From the NCBI GenBank assembly GCA_943704425.1, contig CALSCP010002263.1:1-37543 (forward strand): a DNA stretch of 37,543 nt, written 5' to 3'. The stretch comes from Ministeria vibrans ATCC 50519 (Eukaryota > Protista > Filasterea). The position numbers were made by a program, and so were the translations under genes. Of the stretch, positions 22,713 through 37,190 are shown one piece after another. The notes below the pieces were generated by a model. It was not told the origin of the DNA and ran no database searches. It was given only the letters and a program-made list of their open reading frames with translations. Numbering within the stretch: position 1 is the first letter of the stretch; each line of letters opens with the position of its first letter.

Positions 22713-25700
22713 TATCATTATCATCACTACTGTCGCTCAGCGATGGTCGGAATCCCGCTCCAGGCGACGGAGGCTCAAACATCGTCGCATCGTTTGTCGC
22801 GACCGGTTGTGCAGGGAGCTGACGACGCTGTCCGCCACTGCTGCCACCACTCTTTTTGCGACTCACACTTGTCACCGTCACGGAGGTGGTGGAGGTGGTG
22901 GCGTCGTTTCGAATCGCATAGCCAACCATCTGTCCGGTCTGGGGATCTTCGACGGGTTCCGCCAGGGGTGTCACAGAGCCACGGCCATCTTCCATCTCGA
23001 CGGCCAAACTGGGGCTGCGTTCCAGCACCACCAGACTCCCTCCACTCGCACCACGACTGCCCACGCTTGTTGTGGCAACGGAAGACTCTTCCATCTCGAC
23101 GGGTGTGTCGTTCATGGCCTCCATGCGTGCACGCAATGATTCACGCTCTTTGCGCTCTCCTTCCAGACGCAGTCGTGTCTTCACTGCCAGCTCCTTGGCT
23201 TCCGTCGCACCCACATCGGCCCCCATGACGCCAGGCTCAAGCTCAAGAAAGCCATGCTCTTCGTCGATGGCATACGAACCAGGACGCAGCTTGGCTGCCA
23301 GTGCCTTCGCCCCTGGTCGTGCCTGGGGTGCGGCAAAGGGTGGAAGGATAGTGGGACTTGGGCTGCCAACGCTTGGCGGTGGCAACGGTGGTGGTCCCGC
23401 TGGGGGTGGTCCCACGGGCAATGCAGGCGACTCGGTGTTGGCAACGGGCGTCTTGGACGGTGGCAACGGAGGTGAAATTTCGGAAATTTGGTGGTGAATC
23501 ACGGATGCACGGCGTGGCTGTGCCGCCGCCAACACGTCAGAAGCATTGTCGTCGTCGTTGTCGTCGTCGTTGTCGTCGTCGTCGTCGTCGTCATTGTCCG
23601 CAGATGAGTTCAAATCATCGTCGTCGGTTGTCAGGTCGTCGTCTATGGAATCATCGTCTTCTGTCGTCGTCGCATCATCACCATCTTCTCCTTCTTCTTC
23701 TCTTTCTTCTTCGTTTCCTTCTCCTTCTTCTCCTTTTTCTTCGCCACCATTCTTGTCGTTCTCCTTTTCCTGCACAACTGGTGTCTCCACTTGCTCTTCG
23801 TCCTCCTCAACCAACACGTCGAGTCCGTCAGTACCAAAGGGACCCGCCAACGGCATTGAGCGTTCTGGTAACAGCTCACTGGCCCCCGACCGTTGCATGA
23901 GCACTTCAAAACGCATCGACAAGACGGCCGCCGGATAGGCCGCATTCTCGTCGTCAAACAGAAATGCCTCGTCCAGTTGCGCTGCCATGGCCACCAGTCG
24001 CTCAATGTCCGGCTTCTTCTCGGCAATCTCGGTGGCGTTGGGTGCCCCCACATCCTCGCAGGCAAGCAGCCACGCACCAAAGGCGTCCGACCGCGCCACG
24101 TACTCCTCCAGTAGCCGGGCGTCGCTGGAGCACTGCGCTCGGCCATCCCGCAGCTGCTCTTGTCGGTAGCGCAACAGGGCAGTCGCCTCCTCGACTCGCT
24201 CGCGCAACGACTCGCTTTGCACCGTCTGGTCTGAATTTGCAATGGAAACACTCAGCTCACGCAATGCCTCGACATGCTCGCTCATGTCACCACCGTCGGA
24301 GGCGCGCTCCAGGTGTGCTTCGATGACGGTCGCCAAACGTTCGTAGTCTTCGTCGTTCTCGCACGCACACGCATCGGCACAGTCATCCTCAACACTCTCC
24401 AGCCAGCGAGTCACCTCTCCCTGGTGCTCGTCAAACTTGGCCATGTGAACCTCGGTGGTGGCATACGACGCGAGACACTTGTCCAACTGACGACCCCGTT
24501 CGCCGGCCGAGCGCACCAGCGACTCGTAGCGTGCCAGTAGCACCTGAAAGCGCACCGGCAACTCTTTGTCATCATCGTCGGCGGCGACCGCGCGCGCAAT
24601 GCTCGCCTGCAGCGACTCCACCTTGACACGGTGCGCCTCAACGGTACTCTCCAGCTCCGTGTGCACACCAATAAGCGCGCGTGTCTCCTCGGGCGTACTG
24701 CCCACCGATCCGGTGGTCTGACGCAACATGAGCATGATGAAGCGGTCGAGTCCGTCCATTTCGCGCTGCAACGCGTGCAACAACAACTGTTGCTCGAGAC
24801 ACCGCTGACGCCCACGCATCGCCTCCTCGAGCTTGACAAATTGCGCCTGGGCTGTCTCCATGCGCGCATGCACACGCGTGCTCACTTCTGCGTCCCGCTC
24901 CACAAGAACCGTGCCGGCCGCAATCGACACCTCTATGCGCGAGTGATGTGCTTCCATTTCGGCGGTGAGCGCGGCATGCGAGGCGACGAGCAGTCGTGTC
25001 GCGGCCAGGTTGCTACCCACGTCAGCGGCCGTCGCCCGCTCGAGTGTCTGTTGCACCCACTCCTCTTCGACATGGAGTCGCTCCGACCAGCGCAAGTACT
25101 CCACCTGGCTCATGAGCACCTTGCGACGATGCTCCACCAGGGTCGTCAGATCGACACCGCGCTGGCGCAACGTCGTCGATGGATTGTCGCCTGCCGACGT
25201 AATACTCTCGGAACGTTCGCGAATCACCGTCACGGTGCTGGGGCCGTTGGTGGTGGCCGAGGGGCTGGCGACCGGCGTAGCTTCAAGCGCCGCGTCGCCC
25301 ACGGACAACTCGGAGACGCGCCGGTGAGAGAGACGCGACACGGCAAGCAAGTCGGACGCTTCAATCACGGAGGCACGTCGTACCACCGACTGCACCGAGC
25401 CTTGCAGCGTCTCGACGCTGGCCGCCAGCAAATCGTGCCGTTTGGTCGCCACCTCGAGAGTGCGCAAGTCGGCGGCGCCATAGTCGTCGTTTGCGAGCGC
25501 CCCATGTTCGGCAAGCAACACTTCCTCGCGTTGGCACTGGTCGCGCAGTGCCAACGCCTCGGTGTGTCGTCGCACCTGTGTCACACGCTGTTCGCACGCC
25601 TCGAACACCTCGTTGTGCAACTGTCGCAGCTGCTCGCCACGCGTGCCGTCGGTGCACGCCGATGCGGCTGCGTCTACGGCGGCACCACGCGAGGCGATGG

Positions 25701-30651: not shown

Positions 30652-31068
30652 NNNNNNNNNNNNNNNNNNNNNNNNNNNNNNNNNNNNNNNNNNNNNNNNN
30701 NNNNNNNNNNNNNNNNNNNNNNNNNNNNNNNNNNNNNNNNNNNNNNNNNNNNNNNNNNNNNNNNNNNNNNNNNNNNNNNNNNNNNNNNNNNNNNNNNNNN
30801 NNNNNNNNNNNNNNNNNNNNNNNNNNNNNNNNNNNNNNNNNNNNNNNNNNNNNNNNNNNNNNNNNNNNNNNNNNNNNNNNNNNNNNNNNNNNNNNNNNNN
30901 NNNNNNNNNNNNNNNNNNNNNNNNNNNNNNNNNNNNNNNNNNNNNNNNNNNNNNNNNNNNNNNNNNNNNNNNNNNNNNNNNNNNNNNNNNNNNNNNNNNN
31001 NNNNNNNNNNNNNNNNNNNNNNNNNNNNNNNNNNNNNNNNNNNNNNNNNNNNNNNNNNNNNNNNNNNN
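30652..31068. other. Assembly gap (N run)
   Basis: N characters. The gap hides the 3' half of the second tRNA copy and probably the spectrin 5' exons. Confidence 0.99.
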
Positions 31069-31120
31069 GCTGTTCACGAGAGCGGGAAGTTGCCCGCGGT
31101 TGCCGTTACACCACCGGGGA
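31069..31120 (-). tRNA. 5' half of a second copy of the D-loop-insertion tRNA-Glu gene, truncated by the gap
   Basis: Exact reverse complement of 35960-36011. The anticodon would lie inside the gap and is not seen. Confidence 0.8.
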
Positions 31121-31179
31121 GAATTTTCCATGTTGCGCTTTTGCCTTAGCTGATGCTTTGGCTACTGCACATGGCGAAA
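31121..31179 (-). ncRNA. Conserved hairpin leader upstream of tRNA copy 2
   Basis: Exact reverse complement of 35901-35959. TTATA on the minus strand at 31204-31208. Confidence 0.5.
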
Positions 31180-31276
31180 GATTGCCAAAATGTGCTATTG
31201 GTGTATAAAGTGAAGTGGGTTCGACGCACATGCATCGACAGTTACATGTTCGCTGCATTCAACACTGGAGTGCGAT

Positions 31277-31556: not shown

Positions 31557-31760
31557 ATAATAAAATTAATATACAAAAGAAGAAGAAAACTCCATTGATT
31601 CATTTAATTGGCTCAAACTTGAAAAATAATAAAAAATAATAATTATAATACAATAGAGTAATACAATGCTTCCGCCACAGGCTAGCTCCAAGGAAGATGA
31701 AGCACCCATAGACCCGCAGATACGCTCTCGCAGCAACATATGGATAGCGATGATAATTAC

Positions 31761-34758
31761 TTATGGCGGTGGCAAGAGAGGCAAAGCCCAGTCCTGAAGA
31801 ATGCGAGCGGCATGTTCGGGCTGCTGAGCGGCGTGTGCCAGAAAAAAGGGGTGTTGTTGAAGCTGAGTGGGGTCTGGTCTTTGTGCGTGGTCCTTTTCCA
31901 GACTACAAAAAGAAAAGAAAAAAATAAGGGGGGGGGACTGAAGGGGCATTTATGCTTACCATTGGGCAACAAAGTCACACAAGAGGGGAGTAAAGTTGAA
32001 ACGTGCGGCAACTGTGTGCAGAGATGGTGGTGGATCGTTGACTAGTGTAGAATGCAAGAGAGATAGAGAGGAAAAAGGGAGAAAGAAACAAAGTGACAGG
32101 GAGACAGAGACAAAGACACACAGCGAGAAACAGAGACAGAGGCCACACAGACACACAAAAGGAGAGACAGAGAGACGAAAAGACGGAGAAAAGAGGGAGA
32201 AACAACAAAGTGATAGAGAGAGAGAAACAAAGCGAGTGTAAGAGATGTGAGTAAGCAAGTCAGTAAGTGAGAGGTCGCGCAGTGAGTGCGTACCAACCAT
32301 GGACATGAGTTCAAAGGGACCAGTTGCCTGGTAAGGAAAGCGGCCAGACGCCATCTCGACTACGGTCAGTCCCAGCGACCATACCTCGGAGCGCAGAGAG
32401 TACGGAAACGACGCGATTCGTTCGGGCTAAATGCAAAAAGACATAGATTGGCATGTGGACAAAACGGATTTTTTGGTCTAGTTCGTCGTTTGGGTAACAT
32501 ATTTTAAAGCCCCTTTGACAAATGTTGGAGTGTCTTATGACATATTTTAAAGCCCCAGTGACTAATTTTTGGGGTACAATCGACTTTCACAGTCCCATTG
32601 CCAAATGTTTAGTAGTCATTTGTCTTTCACAGTCCCATTGACCATAGGTTTGGGTGTTATGACATTTAAAGGTTCAATTGGTAAATTTAGTGTCATTAAT
32701 TGACATTAATTTTGTCAAGTGCGATTGATACCCTACTGTAATTGCGACGCACTACTATGCATTGCAAGATTCGTCGTGTCTCTCAAAGTGTCTCTTACTG
32801 CCATATACGCGTTTGTGCCCACAAATGAGACAGCAACTGACTTTTCCAGTTGAGCCGACACACCAAAATCACACAGTTTTATGGCTCCAGAACTATTCAC
32901 CAGAATATTTGACGGTTTCACATCTGAACAATTTGACCCATTAGAAGATGTGCGAACATGACTTTTTTTTTTTGTCTGACCGCGATGGAGGATCTTAAAG
33001 TGTTCGTAGAGAAAGAGAAGTCCCCGGACAACACTCACAACGATCGGCCCCAAAATAGGCTCTTCAATGTGTCCGTAATAGTGATACGCACTACAAAAAA
33101 AGGTCGCACACAAAAAAAAATACAATATTAATTTATTATAATTAATAATAATAATAATTATTATTATTATTATAATATTATTTTTATTATTTATATAATT
33201 ATTTTTATTATTATATTGACTAATCGCATATGCATAGTCTTCTCCTTTCTTCCCTCCATCACCCTCACGACCTTATCAAAGTAACTCTCCTTTCAATCAC
33301 TTTGCCTTCGTTCATCGTGTTATCACATCTGGCTATTTATCTCCGTATTCCGCCCCCCTGCCTCTCTCTCTCTATCACTTTGTTTCTCTCTCCTCTCCAT
33401 CTCTCCCTCCTCTCTCTCAGACTCTATCACTTTGTTTCTCATTCCCCCCTCTTTAACCTCTCTTATCACATTACCCATCAAGACTACCCGCATCCATGTA
33501 CTCCATGAAAAGACAGATGGCACCTGTGGGAAGGGCACATGCGCCGTAGTATTCAACTACAAAGGGACATTCGCTCACCCGCTTGAGCACCTCCAGCTCA
33601 AGTAGAATCTGACGAAGCACACTCCCTGGCTCGTGCACAGGAAACTCCTTCATGGCAACCGTCTGTTGTGACGGTGTGTGTTTCGCCCGAAACACAGTGC
33701 CTCCGCTCCCGTGTCCCAACAAATTTAACCTGGGCAACAACAAAAAAAAAAAAAAAAAAAAAAAAAAAGCACACGAAACACAAAACACAAAAGGGTTTGT
33801 TTGCGGGAAAGGGCAAAAGAGCAATACAATGGTAAAGGTCCGACGTACCGTTGAAAATCGCGAATGTCAACGGTAAACTCGCCCTTTAAAAGATTCATTA
33901 GTCGATCGACACTGTGCACTGTCTCACTCCTAAAAGACAAGGTTGAGAAAATGCAAAAGTAAACCGTTCGAGCAGGTGAACACAAGACAGCAACTAAAAA
34001 TGAAGGGGTACTCAACTTGAGCAAGAACATGCATTGAGGAGACAGACGAAAAAGGGTTGGTTTCAAAAAGAAAAAAGAAACAAAAGTACACATGAGATGT
34101 GCCAAATATCGCGAGAGAAATACACAAGTGAGAGAACGCGTAAATACAGCCGATAGATATAACAACAAACCAAATGAGTCGGGGGTGCAAAACACAAAAG
34201 TGCAAGCAACAGACCAAACATACAGCACAAGCAAGAGTGCAGACACAAATCACACCTGGCAATGCAAATGACAGGCTAAAAATATTTACCAAGCCAAATA
34301 ATGAAGAAACGGTGACAGAGATACAAACAGTGACAAGCAACACACCAAAACGTATGCAGATAAAAAAAAGTACAAGCAACAGGCCAATGAACAAGTACAA
34401 TCACGGACAGGTACAAAAAATGGACCAGTACGACCAGTACAAATGAACAAAGCAGTTCAAACTTCAAATGGACAAAACAGTTCAAATGGACAACACAGTT
34501 CAAATGAACAAAACAGTTCAAATGGACAAAAATAATAGTTCAAATGGACAGGTACAAAAAATGGACCAGTATGACCAGTACAAATGAACAAAGTCAAACT
34601 TCAAATGGACAACACAGTTCAAATGAACAAAACCGTTCAAATGGACAAAAATAATAGTTCAAATGAACAGGTACAAAAAATGGACAAGTACAAAGCAGTT
34701 CAAATGGACAAAACATTTCAAATGACAAGTGAGAGATCAAAAGAAGAAAACAAAAACA

Positions 34759-34793
<35 letters not shown>

Positions 34794-35343
34794 TTAAGCA
34801 ACGTACGGTTCCAGACTGGTGGGCTCGTTGCCCAGCGAGGCGCCTCCAAATAAATCCACTGTGAGTCCGAGTTCGTTCATCGACGGCACGTCAAACGGAC
34901 GCGGCTCAGGAATGATAAACAACTGGATGGCTGTGTTGCTTCCCGCTCCCTTCTACACAGCCACACATGGCATGGACCGTGTTACAGGCGGCACCACACC
35001 AATCGCATCGTACCAAGCGAAACATCTCAGCGACTTCTTGGTCGCTTTTCACCGAGACACGGTCGCCCTCGTCGTCTTCATCTACACAGAGAAGCATGAA
35101 ATCCGTCAACGCGGCCGACATTCCGCTTGTCTCTTGCGCACACTCAAACTGAACACCACCGCCAAAGGCTTGGCTGAGCGTGCCCTGTGGGAATCAGCCA
35201 AAAGTCCCAAAAACAAAAAAAGACGCGTCAGTGAGCGAGATTCAAAACAAGTGGCGCACCAAAATGTCCGCGTATGACATTTCCGTCGTTGCCATGACTA
35301 GGATTGGTTCAGCATCGTTGAGGCAACACTGTAACTCTATCAT
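31761..35343 (-). CDS. MAP2K5: MAP kinase kinase 5 (MEK5): PB1 domain + STE7 kinase, 11 exons
   Basis: Exons 35343-35260, 35184-35142, 35081-35014, 34952-34807, 33929-33849, 33729-33475, 33090-32981, 32923-32799, 32426-32294, 32041-31960, 31902-31761. PB1 OPCA motif [18 protein letters not shown]; LGHGSGGTV; [14 protein letters not shown]; [31 protein letters not shown] (GTNAYM as in MEK5). Confidence 0.92.
34375..34730. repeat. Intronic minisatellite (~18-bp unit GTTCAAATG(G/A)ACAA(A/C)ACA with higher-order blocks)
   Basis: Many copies of CAAATG(G/A)ACA. The block GGTACAAAAAATGGAC occurs three times. Confidence 0.92.
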
Positions 35344-35871
35344 TTTGAAATATTTTGATGATGGGTGATCGAATTATTCGAATTATTCGAAACTGACATG
35401 AAAAGAAAATCCGTCCCCAAATCAAAATATACCAAGGATCAAACGAAGATCAAACTCTCTCTCTCTTTCTCGTTTGGGATGCGGGTACAAGCTCACTACA
35501 CACTAGAATGGATGCACTTATTGCACCCAGCTTATTGCTTTTGTCCTAGCCAGTCAGAACCAACCACTTTCTCAGCATGTTTTAACTTTTGGAATGGGAT
35601 TGCTTTAAAATTGAAATGTCAACCCATAACTCAAACTCATTCAAGGAGAGAACAATCACTAGATAAGACGAGGGTCATCAACACATTTACGATAGCTGAG
35701 TAAAGCGTGTACTACGCGGACACTGAAAACGACTTGTCATCAGGCAAACCCGAAACCCGACGCCTCCTGCAAGAGTGACATTCTTTTACTATTGCCTCTC
35801 GCAGGTGCGCCAGTCATTGTATAGCCTCATGAGTGCCAGTTCGCAAACACCGTTGTATTCGAAAAAACAAA

Positions 35872-35876
35872 TTATA
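35872..35876 (+). promoter_or_regulatory. TATA-like element (TTATA) ~30 nt upstream of the conserved leader
   Basis: Kept at the same offset in the inverted copy (31204-31208) while the neighbouring bases differ. Confidence 0.45.
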
Positions 35877-35900
35877 GAGGAGTAGCACATTTTGGCCATT

Positions 35901-35959
35901 TTTCGCCATGTGCAGTAGCCAAAGCATCAGCTAAGGCAAAAGCGCAACATGGAAAATTC
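35901..35959 (+). ncRNA. Putative structured 5' leader or co-transcribed hairpin RNA
   Basis: Nested pairings CCATG/CATGG, TGC/GCA, GCC/GGC and AGC-ATCA-GCT. Identical in the second copy. Confidence 0.5.
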
Positions 35960-36060
35960 TCCCCGGTGGTGTAACGGCAACCGCGGGCAACTTCCCGCTC
36001 TCGTGAACAGCATCGGACGTTCTCACCGTCCAGACCGGGGTTCGACTCCCCGTCGGGGAG
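35960..36060 (+). tRNA. trnE-CTC: tRNA-Glu (anticodon CTC) with a ~27-29 nt insertion (putative non-canonical intron) in the D-loop
   Basis: Acceptor TCCCCGG/TCGGGGA+G; A-box TGGTGTAACGG; D-stem GTGT/GCAT; anticodon arm GGACG-TT-CTC-AC-CGTCC (CTC at 36022-36024); 4-nt variable loop AGAC; T-arm CGGGG-TTCGACT-CCCCG. Length is 101 nt versus ~72 expected. Confidence 0.9.
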
Positions 36061-36076
36061 TTTTCCTTTTTTTTTT
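36061..36076 (+). terminator. Pol III oligo(T) terminator
   Basis: TTTTCCTTTTTTTTTT directly after the discriminator base. Confidence 0.8.
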
Positions 36077-36109
36077 GTTTTTGTTTCACATAATTATCTT
36101 TTTTTTTTG

Positions 36110-36187
36110 ACTTCCCGTTTTCGTGAACAGCATCGGACGTTCTCACCGTCCAGAGTGTCTCCAGACCGAGGTTCGACTCACCGTCGG
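36110..36187 (+). pseudogene. 3' fragment of tRNA-Glu (tandem duplicate 1)
   Basis: Starts at ACTTCCCG inside the D-loop insertion. It has an 11-nt insertion in the variable region, T-stem substitutions and a truncated acceptor strand. Confidence 0.85.
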
Positions 36188-36251
36188 CTTTCCTTTTTTT
36201 TTTTGTTTGTTTTTTGTTTCACATCACATCAAATTATATCTCTTTTTTTTT

Positions 36252-36328
36252 ACTTCCCGCTTTCGCGAACAGCATCAGACGTTCTCACCGTTAAGACCGG
36301 GTTCGACTCCATTTTGGCCATCGGGGAG
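36252..36328 (+). pseudogene. 3' fragment of tRNA-Glu (tandem duplicate 2)
   Basis: Same start point as duplicate 1. The anticodon stem is mutated and the T-stem 3' strand is replaced by CATTTTGGCCA. Confidence 0.85.
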
Positions 36329-36427
36329 TTTTCTTGAATACATCTCTATTACAGTCACCACGCAAACGCCCTATGACTTGTTGACTTGTTCTTCATTCAC
36401 TCTCATTCACTCATTTTGTTCATTGTT

Positions 36428-37190
36428 GAAGACACAGCCAAATCGCCTTGCAAACTCAACCAAGACCTCTAAAGGTAACATGGGAGAACAGTGGCAGGTC
36501 AGAGTGCTGCGTCGATTAATAATAATTGAAAAAGAAGAATACAAGAAGAATACAATCAATTTATTAATGATTTACAGTCACCACACGAAGACACAGCCAG
36601 ACCGCCTTGCAAACTCGACCGAAACTCTAAGGTAACATGGGAGAATAGTGGCAGGTCAGAGTGCTGTGTCGTCGCTATCCAGTGAGGAAATCGCGATGTT
36701 ACGCCATACCCCCCTCCAGCCAGTTGGGGCTTAGGGCTCTGACACAACTCAGACACCAATGAGGTGTCTGTCGGCAAAGAGTGTACAGTCGAAGTCGTGG
36801 TTGAACTGGTTGGTGGCGGTAAAGTCCATGTGACTGCGGGGCGCTTCTGTGGTACACAGGCGGTGCGGGTTGGCTGCAGGGCGGCTGGCGTGCCTGTTGC
36901 CGTGACAGTGTGTTAAAATGAGGATAAAAAAAATGGGAGGGAATAAAGCAGGGGGGAGTAATAAAGAGTGAATCACTGGGTGGCGTTGACGACGGCGATG
37001 AAGCATTTGTACATCTCCGCCAGGGGAAAAAATGCTTCATAGTGAGTGCCTCGGCAAGGGTCTTGGCGACCAGTGAGTTGTGTCGGTGTCGGTACACCGC
37101 TGGGTGACCACCAGTGGAGCAGAAAGTGTTCTGGGCGCACCGTGGTCAGCGGTGGTTATTGCAGTTGTTGTTGTTGTATATCCGTTTTGG
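36428..37190 (-). mobile_element. Decayed RLE-type (CRE/R2-like) non-LTR retroelement 3' region, plus an extra ~90-bp copy of its 3' end (36428-36514)
   Basis: Minus-strand remnants in the expected order: CSTGGHPAVYRHRHNSLVAKTLAEAL (C..GG...RHN), SHMDF...HDFDCT, GGMA...DFL, VSVEFARR, then AATAAA. Stops and frameshifts throughout. Homologous to 19132-19456. Confidence 0.55.

Follow-up and report, generated by a model that had tools for sequence, protein, structure and literature searches.

Reviews place ectopic tRNA introns and circularly permuted tRNA genes in archaea, in nucleomorphs and in a small number of red and green algae only (PMC13578239 of 2026; PMC4090602). In Cyanidioschyzon merolae, for instance, 27 tRNA genes hold 42 introns, 14 of them in the D-loop; the accompanying bulge-helix-bulge motifs are strict, relaxed or helix-less, and excision has been demonstrated by RT-PCR (PMC3728597). 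In the nucleomorph of Guillardia theta, D- and T-arm inserts of 3-24 nt are excised in vivo, sometimes at sites with no clear motif, according to the account of Kawach et al. 2005 given in PMC4090602. D- and T-arm insertions in eukaryotes are otherwise mostly seen in a single aberrant gene that has many synonymous counterparts, and are for that reason regarded as pseudogenes (PMC4090602). Our literature search returned no paper linking permuted tRNA genes with holozoans.

The locus considered here lies in a window of 37,543 nt, the whole stretch of DNA analyzed, from the protist Ministeria vibrans (contig CALSCP010002263.1). Animal-like signaling and cytoskeletal genes are present in the same window; its genes with introns encode SPT5, a spectrin-repeat protein, WD40/STAND proteins and a MAP-kinase-kinase-like protein. 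A protein search with SPT5 gave four distant hits, none of which placed the organism. The features of the tRNA locus are as follows.

35872-35895, forward strand: upstream promoter-like element, TATA-like TTATAGAG at 35872-79 and then AGCACATTTTGG at 35884-95
35896-35959, forward strand: 5' leader, with its own hairpin at about 35898-35957, folding apart from the tRNA domain
35960-36060, forward strand: tRNA-Glu(CTC) cloverleaf, enlarged by about 27 nt past G18-G19
35960-66 / 36053-59, forward strand: acceptor stem, read from the sequence
35960-35979, forward strand: 5' exon, comprising the acceptor 5' strand, U8, G9, D-stem strand GTGT and D-loop AACGGCA including G18-G19
35969-72 / 36010-13, forward strand: D-stem, GTGT with GCAT, read from the sequence
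35974-77, forward strand: first central-helix strand, ACGG (including G18-G19), followed by bulge CAA at 35978-80
35980-36006, forward strand: predicted D-loop intron of 27 nt, with cuts after 35979 and 36006 by the bulge-helix-bulge rule
35983-87 / 35994-98, forward strand: insert hairpin GCGGG/CCCGC, from the minimum-energy fold
36001-04, forward strand: second central-helix strand, TCGT, followed by bulge GAA at 36005-07
36007-36060, forward strand: 3' exon, comprising ACA, the GCAT D-stem strand, anticodon arm, variable loop, T-arm, acceptor strand and G73
36015-19 / 36027-31, forward strand: anticodon stem GGACG/CGTCC, loop TTCTCAC, with CTC at 36022-24
36036-52, forward strand: T-arm CGGGG-TTCGACT-CCCCG (B-box), preceded by the 4-nt variable loop AGAC
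36060, forward strand: G73, with a T-run next
36061-36076, forward strand: RNA polymerase III-type terminator (TTTT, CC, ten T), a layout shared with other dispersed tRNA genes

A sequence-only reading of this DNA had described an otherwise intact tRNA-Glu(CTC) cloverleaf with an insertion in the D-loop, and every one of its coordinates holds. All stems of the full gene pair, the A-box is intact and lies wholly within the 5' exon, and the B-box is intact. The body is of Glu type: it combines the CUC anticodon with U1-A72, G10.U25, U11-A24, U13.G22 and a 4-nt variable loop lacking base 47, features which, anticodon aside, we take to be marks of Glu tRNAs. The D-loop of the unspliced gene measures 37 nt versus the usual 8 or so, and we know of no cytosolic tRNA described with a D-loop of that size. 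With the insert present, neither ARAGORN in default mode nor Rfam (E up to 10) calls a tRNA at the locus. The joined form was built in silico by script and scored locally with ARAGORN; deletion of 35980-36006 yields tRNA-Glu(ctc) with a score of 116.4. Adjacent deletions score about equally, such that ARAGORN does not fix the exact junction.

The central helix has four base pairs, three Watson-Crick and one G.U, and the CAA and GAA that follow its strands are unpaired. An unconstrained minimum-energy fold, with or without the leader, reproduces both the ACGG/UCGU helix and the GCGGG/CCCGC hairpin, as the sequence-only reading had drawn them together with their NAA bulges. Its two caveats, that the pairs flanking the bulges are mismatched and that the spliced D-loop would be 1-2 nt longer than normal, were also correct. 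On the inner side a 2x2 mismatch (C-C, C-U) separates the bulge from the 5-bp hairpin; on the outer side an A faces CA between the bulge and the D-stem. Under the strict hBHBh' definition, in which flanking helices sit directly at the bulges, the motif fails, with h_in and h_out both 0. Because the flanking pairs are mismatched, it fits only relaxed classes, ones that PMC3728597 also accepts. The usual rule places each cut after the second bulge base and would give a 27-nt intron and a 74-nt mature tRNA; the intron so defined contains the 35983-87 / 35994-98 hairpin as well as the second central-helix strand (36001-04). Read by hand, the canonical 37/38 intron of the Leu(CAG) gene on contig C1260 fits the same rule of a 4-bp helix and bulges. 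At 10 nt, four of them between G19 and A21, the D-loop predicted after splicing exceeds the usual length.

How readily such a motif arises by chance depends on what is asked of it. Of the insert shuffles, 23% contain a 4-bp helix that would suit a D-loop of 7-11 nt, so such a helix proves nothing by itself, while the same helix together with an inner helix of at least 5 bp within 2 nt occurs in 0.34% of 5000 insert shuffles, under criteria chosen after the motif had been seen. Taken as a unit, the D-arm and insert show no stability beyond that of their shuffles (z = -1.0), and the whole leader-plus-tRNA transcript is unusually stable against its own (z = -3.45).

Three other ways of parsing the insert were considered and rejected. 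A different register, GGTG/CGCT, with a 28-nt intron at 35974-36001 and an ARAGORN score of 117.2, places D-stem bases in the helix and loses G18-G19. Local alignment of the insert to the 5' exon, as expected of an internal duplication, scores like shuffles (p = 0.43). A D-arm-less tRNA 'inner unit' starting at about 35991, with six of seven acceptor pairs, has an unpaired D-arm, and its two further copies are decayed.

BLAST of the locus against the 29.7-Mb assembly gives four matches, all on this contig and within 5.3 kb. Those other than the gene itself are listed here.

31069-31196, reverse strand: second copy, comprising the element (31185-96), leader, 5' exon, whole insert and start of the 3' exon
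36110-36187, forward strand: decayed fragment U2, which starts within the insert, lacks the 5' exon and the acceptor 3' strand, and carries an 11-nt duplication and two uncompensated T-stem changes
36252-36333, forward strand: decayed fragment U3, which starts within the insert, lacks the 5' exon, and has a broken anticodon stem and T-arm

The second copy is identical across the whole insert (31069-31125, reverse strand), in keeping with the claim of the sequence-only reading that the insertion is unchanged there; identical copies give no covariation. Over the leader, as far upstream as the promoter element, it differs at two bases, with no difference from about 35903 onward; still farther upstream, past the TATA-like element, the sequences of the two copies bear no relation to each other. 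A search of the genome with a Glu 5'-half pattern matches only these two copies. A run of N at 30652-31068 (417 bases) begins exactly inside the second copy and hides its 3' exon.

The fragments tell a different story from the full gene: both lack the 5' exon and show stem-breaking changes and indels, whereas the stems of the full gene are intact. Both begin at ACTTCCCG (36110, 36252). Because U2 and U3 contain sequence from past the terminator, they are best read as DNA-level tandem duplicates that decayed afterward. In U3, the broken T-arm region reads as the 12-mer CATTTTGGCCAT (36310-36321), found also in the upstream/leader region at 35888-35899, and this recurrence hints at repeated local recombination inside the cluster. 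DNA depth over the gene in an independent run is about 3x, with contig breaks at the gene borders, which fits two to three copies.

The upstream element ties the locus to other genes of this genome. AGCACWTTTTGG has 12 matches genome-wide versus none for a reversed control, and nine of the 12 sit 14-64 nt upstream of tRNA genes: two Ala(AGC), a multi-insert Met, Leu(CAG), two permuted Lys(CTT), a permuted gene with a UCC anticodon, and both Glu copies. The remaining matches lie before a small gene (one) and in coding-like DNA (two). Matches on other contigs include the following.

C277:5089, C277:23589, C434:21003, C434:28927, C1049:8559, C1260:43649, C2280:70089, C2371:117556: AGCACWTTTTGG matches

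The one at C2371:117556 precedes a non-tRNA sequence of about 150 nt that ends in a T-run, possibly another small RNA gene. More broadly, a TATA-like box plus an AGCAC(A/T)TTTTGG element marks genes of the Pol III type across the genome, and uninterrupted dispersed genes for Thr, Val, Trp, Phe and Ala-CGC carry close variants (TATA-like plus CAC(A/T)TT) together with a T-run. The Glu gene shows the full set of features of a dispersed nuclear Pol III tRNA gene, namely the upstream element, A and B boxes and a T-run near base 73. Since its element is shared with tRNA genes and a T-run follows, the Glu gene, as judged from these signals, matches the cell's own Pol III tRNA genes in the layout of promoter and terminator.

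Assembled contigs from three runs that we judge to be probable RNA, none of which is on record as RNA, have zero depth over 35509-36433 while covering neighboring mRNA exons, as expected of poly(A)-type libraries, in which a tRNA would not be seen. In the same three runs the gene at 31627-35323 (reverse strand), which lies between the inverted Glu copies, is expressed and spliced, its eight GT-AG introns appearing as joints.

No further nuclear-type Glu(CUC) gene emerged from BLAST of the locus, a T-arm search (up to 3 mismatches), an anticodon-loop plus T-loop pattern or the Glu 5'-half pattern, and pattern-based searches likewise returned no nuclear Glu(UUC) gene; searches of this kind would pass over genes that are permuted or split in another way. 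Across six ORFs of the window, 71% of the Glu codons are GAG, so demand for a Glu(CUC) tRNA is expected. An uninterrupted Glu(CTC) gene, whose existence elsewhere the sequence-only reading had thought worth checking, is present in a tRNA array on contig C2083 (38151-38540) that reads Glu(TTC), Gly, Glu(CTC), Asp, Gly. The array is AT-rich, has no promoter element and no T-runs between its genes, and adjoins an rve integrase ORF and a 1377-aa SF1-helicase/GIY-YIG ORF. Such a setting suggests that a mobile or virus-like element carries the array as cargo; its Glu(CTC) gene might supply the function.

The upstream element is missing from array-type tRNA genes in general, and a T-run from most of them. 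Further tight arrays of uninterrupted, AT-richer tRNA genes occur at C2083:6864-8070, at C585:35684-37082 and on C2093, with anticodons that are partly unusual for eukaryotes (Val-GAC, Arg-GCG, Ser-GGA). Contig C1523, tRNA-rich and of 24% GC, looks mitochondrial.

The Glu insert also has counterparts in the same arm of other tRNAs, the off-site introns that the sequence-only reading had proposed looking for. Gln(UUG) on C1142 carries a 42-nt D-loop insert with TGGT, bulge TT|C, inner helix GCGA/TTGC, GCCA and bulge AT|T; Gln(CUG) on C1507 carries a 29-nt insert at the border of D-loop and D-stem with GGTT, AG|A, ATG/CAT, GATT and CC|C. Both motifs are cleaner than that of Glu, and in both ARAGORN scores highest at the junction predicted by the motif. 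G18-G19 belong to the exon strand of the central helix in Gln(UUG), Gln(CUG) and Glu alike. A tandem array with a 163-bp period at C491:11813-12540 holds four uninterrupted Gln genes, two CTG and two TTG, so the intron-bearing gene on C1142 is not the only Gln(UUG) gene of the assembly.

Canonical introns interrupt Tyr, Asp, Leu and Ser genes, and circularly permuted genes, with the 3' half before the 5' half, occur at several places.

C2280:70089-70200; C277:5060-5300 and 23400-23630; C1769; C491:39636-39876: circularly permuted tRNA genes

The permuted set includes Lys(CTT), split in the T-loop, and the UCC-anticodon gene, which has a Glu/Gly-like body. An elongator-Met-like gene of 145 nt (C1049:8300-8620) and a Leu(CAA) gene of 130 nt (C1255:4908-5148) each contain more than one insert, one of them in the D-arm; our deletion scan removed a single insert at a time, which placed the D-arm inserts of both beyond its reach. 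At least three copies of tRNA-Ala(AGC) (C434:20844-21084, C434:28857-29097, C123:2312-2449) have a D-loop of 17 nt, in which 9 extra bases stand between AGT and TGGTA, with a T-run after all three and the promoter element at both C434 copies. No bulge-helix-bulge was found for these extra bases, which represent an expansion that is kept or else a very short intron of a different type. Among GGTTCAA-type B-box matches, none had a pairing T-stem plus a full acceptor stem. Two exact-pattern scans of metagenomes, one for 5' exon plus gap plus loop plus T-loop and one for a 31-mer of the 3' exon, returned no relatives, a result to which exact patterns lend little weight.

The enzyme such genes would need is encoded. 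Two genes with PF01974 (C1244, C1078) and one each for Sen54 (PF12928, C1258) and Sen15 (PF09631, C1907) all score above cut-offs; all four TSEN subunit families, a set that the sequence-only reading had proposed examining, are thus represented.

Taken together, we think it probable that the locus is a working nuclear tRNA-Glu(CUC) gene that exists in two copies or more and whose D-loop is interrupted at 35980-36006 by a relaxed bulge-helix-bulge intron. It is favored because the cloverleaf is complete and returns an ARAGORN score of 116.4 after removal of the intron in silico, because the copies agree through the insert, with unrelated flanks and decayed neighbors that lack the 5' exon, and because introns in the same arm of Gln genes, permuted genes and four TSEN subunit genes are present. 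Permuted tRNA genes need the same splicing enzyme and are therefore counted for the intron. Transcription, the cleavage sites, ligation and charging of the Glu(CUC) tRNA are matters that we infer from the sequence and fold, the context, the copies and the parallel genes.

On this model RNA polymerase III would start downstream of the TATA-like/AGCACATTTTGG element and stop in the T-run. In the precursor, D-loop bases A15-G19 would pair with intron bases 36001-04 in the 4-bp helix, leaving CAA and GAA unpaired after its strands; with the intron hairpin closing one end of the motif and the D-stem its other end, the result would be a relaxed bulge-helix-bulge. The two catalytic subunits of the tRNA-splicing endonuclease would then be guided by this motif rather than by the Sen54 'ruler', cutting after the second bulge base on each side. 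A ligase would join the exons, and RNase P (at the leader) and tRNase Z would trim the ends. The predicted product has 74 nt, a D-arm of G10.U25, U11-A24, G12-C23 and U13.G22, a 10-nt D-loop and no base 47. Eukaryotic endonucleases reportedly cut bulge-helix-bulge substrates in vitro independently of the mature domain, as Fabbri and colleagues are said to have found in 1998, and this is the mode proposed for the Glu precursor.

The main rival is that an ordinary tRNA-Glu(CUC) gene was disabled by a D-loop insertion or rearrangement and then duplicated, GAG being read by the array Glu(CTC) or by Glu(UUC) wobble; we rate this as unlikely. The general practice of taking D- and T-arm insertions in eukaryotes as pseudogenes (PMC4090602) speaks for it, but that rule concerns a lone aberrant gene beside many synonymous ones, whereas our searches turned up no normal nuclear-type copy of this gene. 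The locus is rearranged, with decayed tandem fragments alongside, yet four stems, promoter and terminator have stayed intact while those adjacent fragments decayed. A relaxed motif and a D-arm fold that is not significant against shuffles are also what a disabled gene might show; however, the insert is kept in both copies and has its like in Gln genes. The uninterrupted Glu(CTC) gene on C2083 offers the most concrete substitute, although it sits in an AT-rich array that has neither promoter element nor T-runs, beside the integrase and helicase/GIY-YIG ORFs.

The sequence-only reading had left a choice between a spliced D-loop intron and a tRNA-like RNA with an enlarged D-arm. The intron is the better supported of the two, by the promoter, the want of another nuclear Glu(CUC) gene in our searches, the Gln introns, the permuted genes and TSEN. 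That a 101-nt RNA instead keeps the insert, and acts as a tRNA or tRNA-like RNA whose enlarged D-arm bears an extra hairpin, we consider improbable. The 17-nt D-loops of Ala(AGC), for which no bulge-helix-bulge was found, suggest that large D-loops may be tolerated, but nucleomorphs can excise very short ectopic inserts (PMC4090602), which makes Ala(AGC) unclear support. In the folded precursor, moreover, G18-G19 would be locked in the central helix and could not make the D/T-loop elbow, and the geometry of the insert is that of a splicing substrate, as in the Gln genes.

A tRNA-derived repeat with no role in translation, whether SINE-like or a retro-copied pre-tRNA, would account for tandem fragments that begin within the insert, each after a T-run, but is very improbable and largely refuted by copy number, since in place of the many diverged, dispersed copies that the sequence-only reading named as its refutation there are four matches in 29.7 Mb, all within 5.3 kb of a single contig, with DNA depth of about 3x rather than high copy number, fragments that run past the terminator and so point to duplication of DNA, and no family of diverged copies.

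If the Glu gene is spliced as proposed, a TSEN that includes Sen54 and Sen15 can use a local motif inside the part of the tRNA body that the ruler reads, and Ministeria vibrans becomes a natural system for testing how the eukaryotic enzyme chooses its sites. On a wider claim we are evenly divided: that an animal-related, non-photosynthetic protist with a four-subunit TSEN routinely splices ectopic bulge-helix-bulge introns, including one in what is possibly its sole nuclear Glu(CUC) gene. If that is true, an endonuclease of the opisthokont lineage works in vivo by following the motif independently of the tRNA body (the 'archaeal' mode), and scrambled tRNA genes are no peculiarity of algae or archaea. 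The kind of disrupted tRNA gene is already known; the interest lies mainly in the lineage and in the full TSEN set, and what is new hinges on the host being related to animals. There is also a practical side, in that standard tRNA finders miss such genes, so the tRNA sets of protists may be under-annotated.

How the locus compares with known systems can be set out case by case. With C. merolae (PMC3728597) and Chondrus crispus (PMC13578239) it shares a nuclear D-loop intron, motifs that range from strict to relaxed, an intron length within 11-69 nt, and a genome that also holds permuted genes and canonical 37/38 introns. Unlike C. merolae, the window has animal-like genes and gives no sign that the host is an alga; Sen15 is encoded here, whereas the discussion in PMC3728597 implies that a subunit of the yeast-type complex was not identified there; and excision is proven there, inferred here. 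The nucleomorph of Guillardia theta likewise shows D-arm insertion in a eukaryote-derived tRNA gene, but as described in PMC4090602 its inserts measure 3-24 nt and belong to a reduced algal nucleus, in contrast to 27 nt with a recognizable motif in a nuclear genome of 29.7 Mb.

The archaeal non-canonical introns (Crenarchaeota and others), to the extent that Marck & Grosjean 2003 is relayed in PMC4090602, resemble the predicted Glu intron in their 4-bp helix, 3-nt bulges and cut after the second base, and in a position independent of the anticodon loop. They differ in that the flanking helices are mismatched here and in that the enzyme would be a four-subunit TSEN, not an EndA with a broad-specificity loop. 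Canonical 37/38 introns, which TSEN locates with the Sen54 ruler, would probably share with the Glu intron both the enzyme and the cut geometry. Unlike them, however, the D-loop site lies in the part of the tRNA body that the ruler uses, and recognition at this site would therefore have to rely on the local motif.
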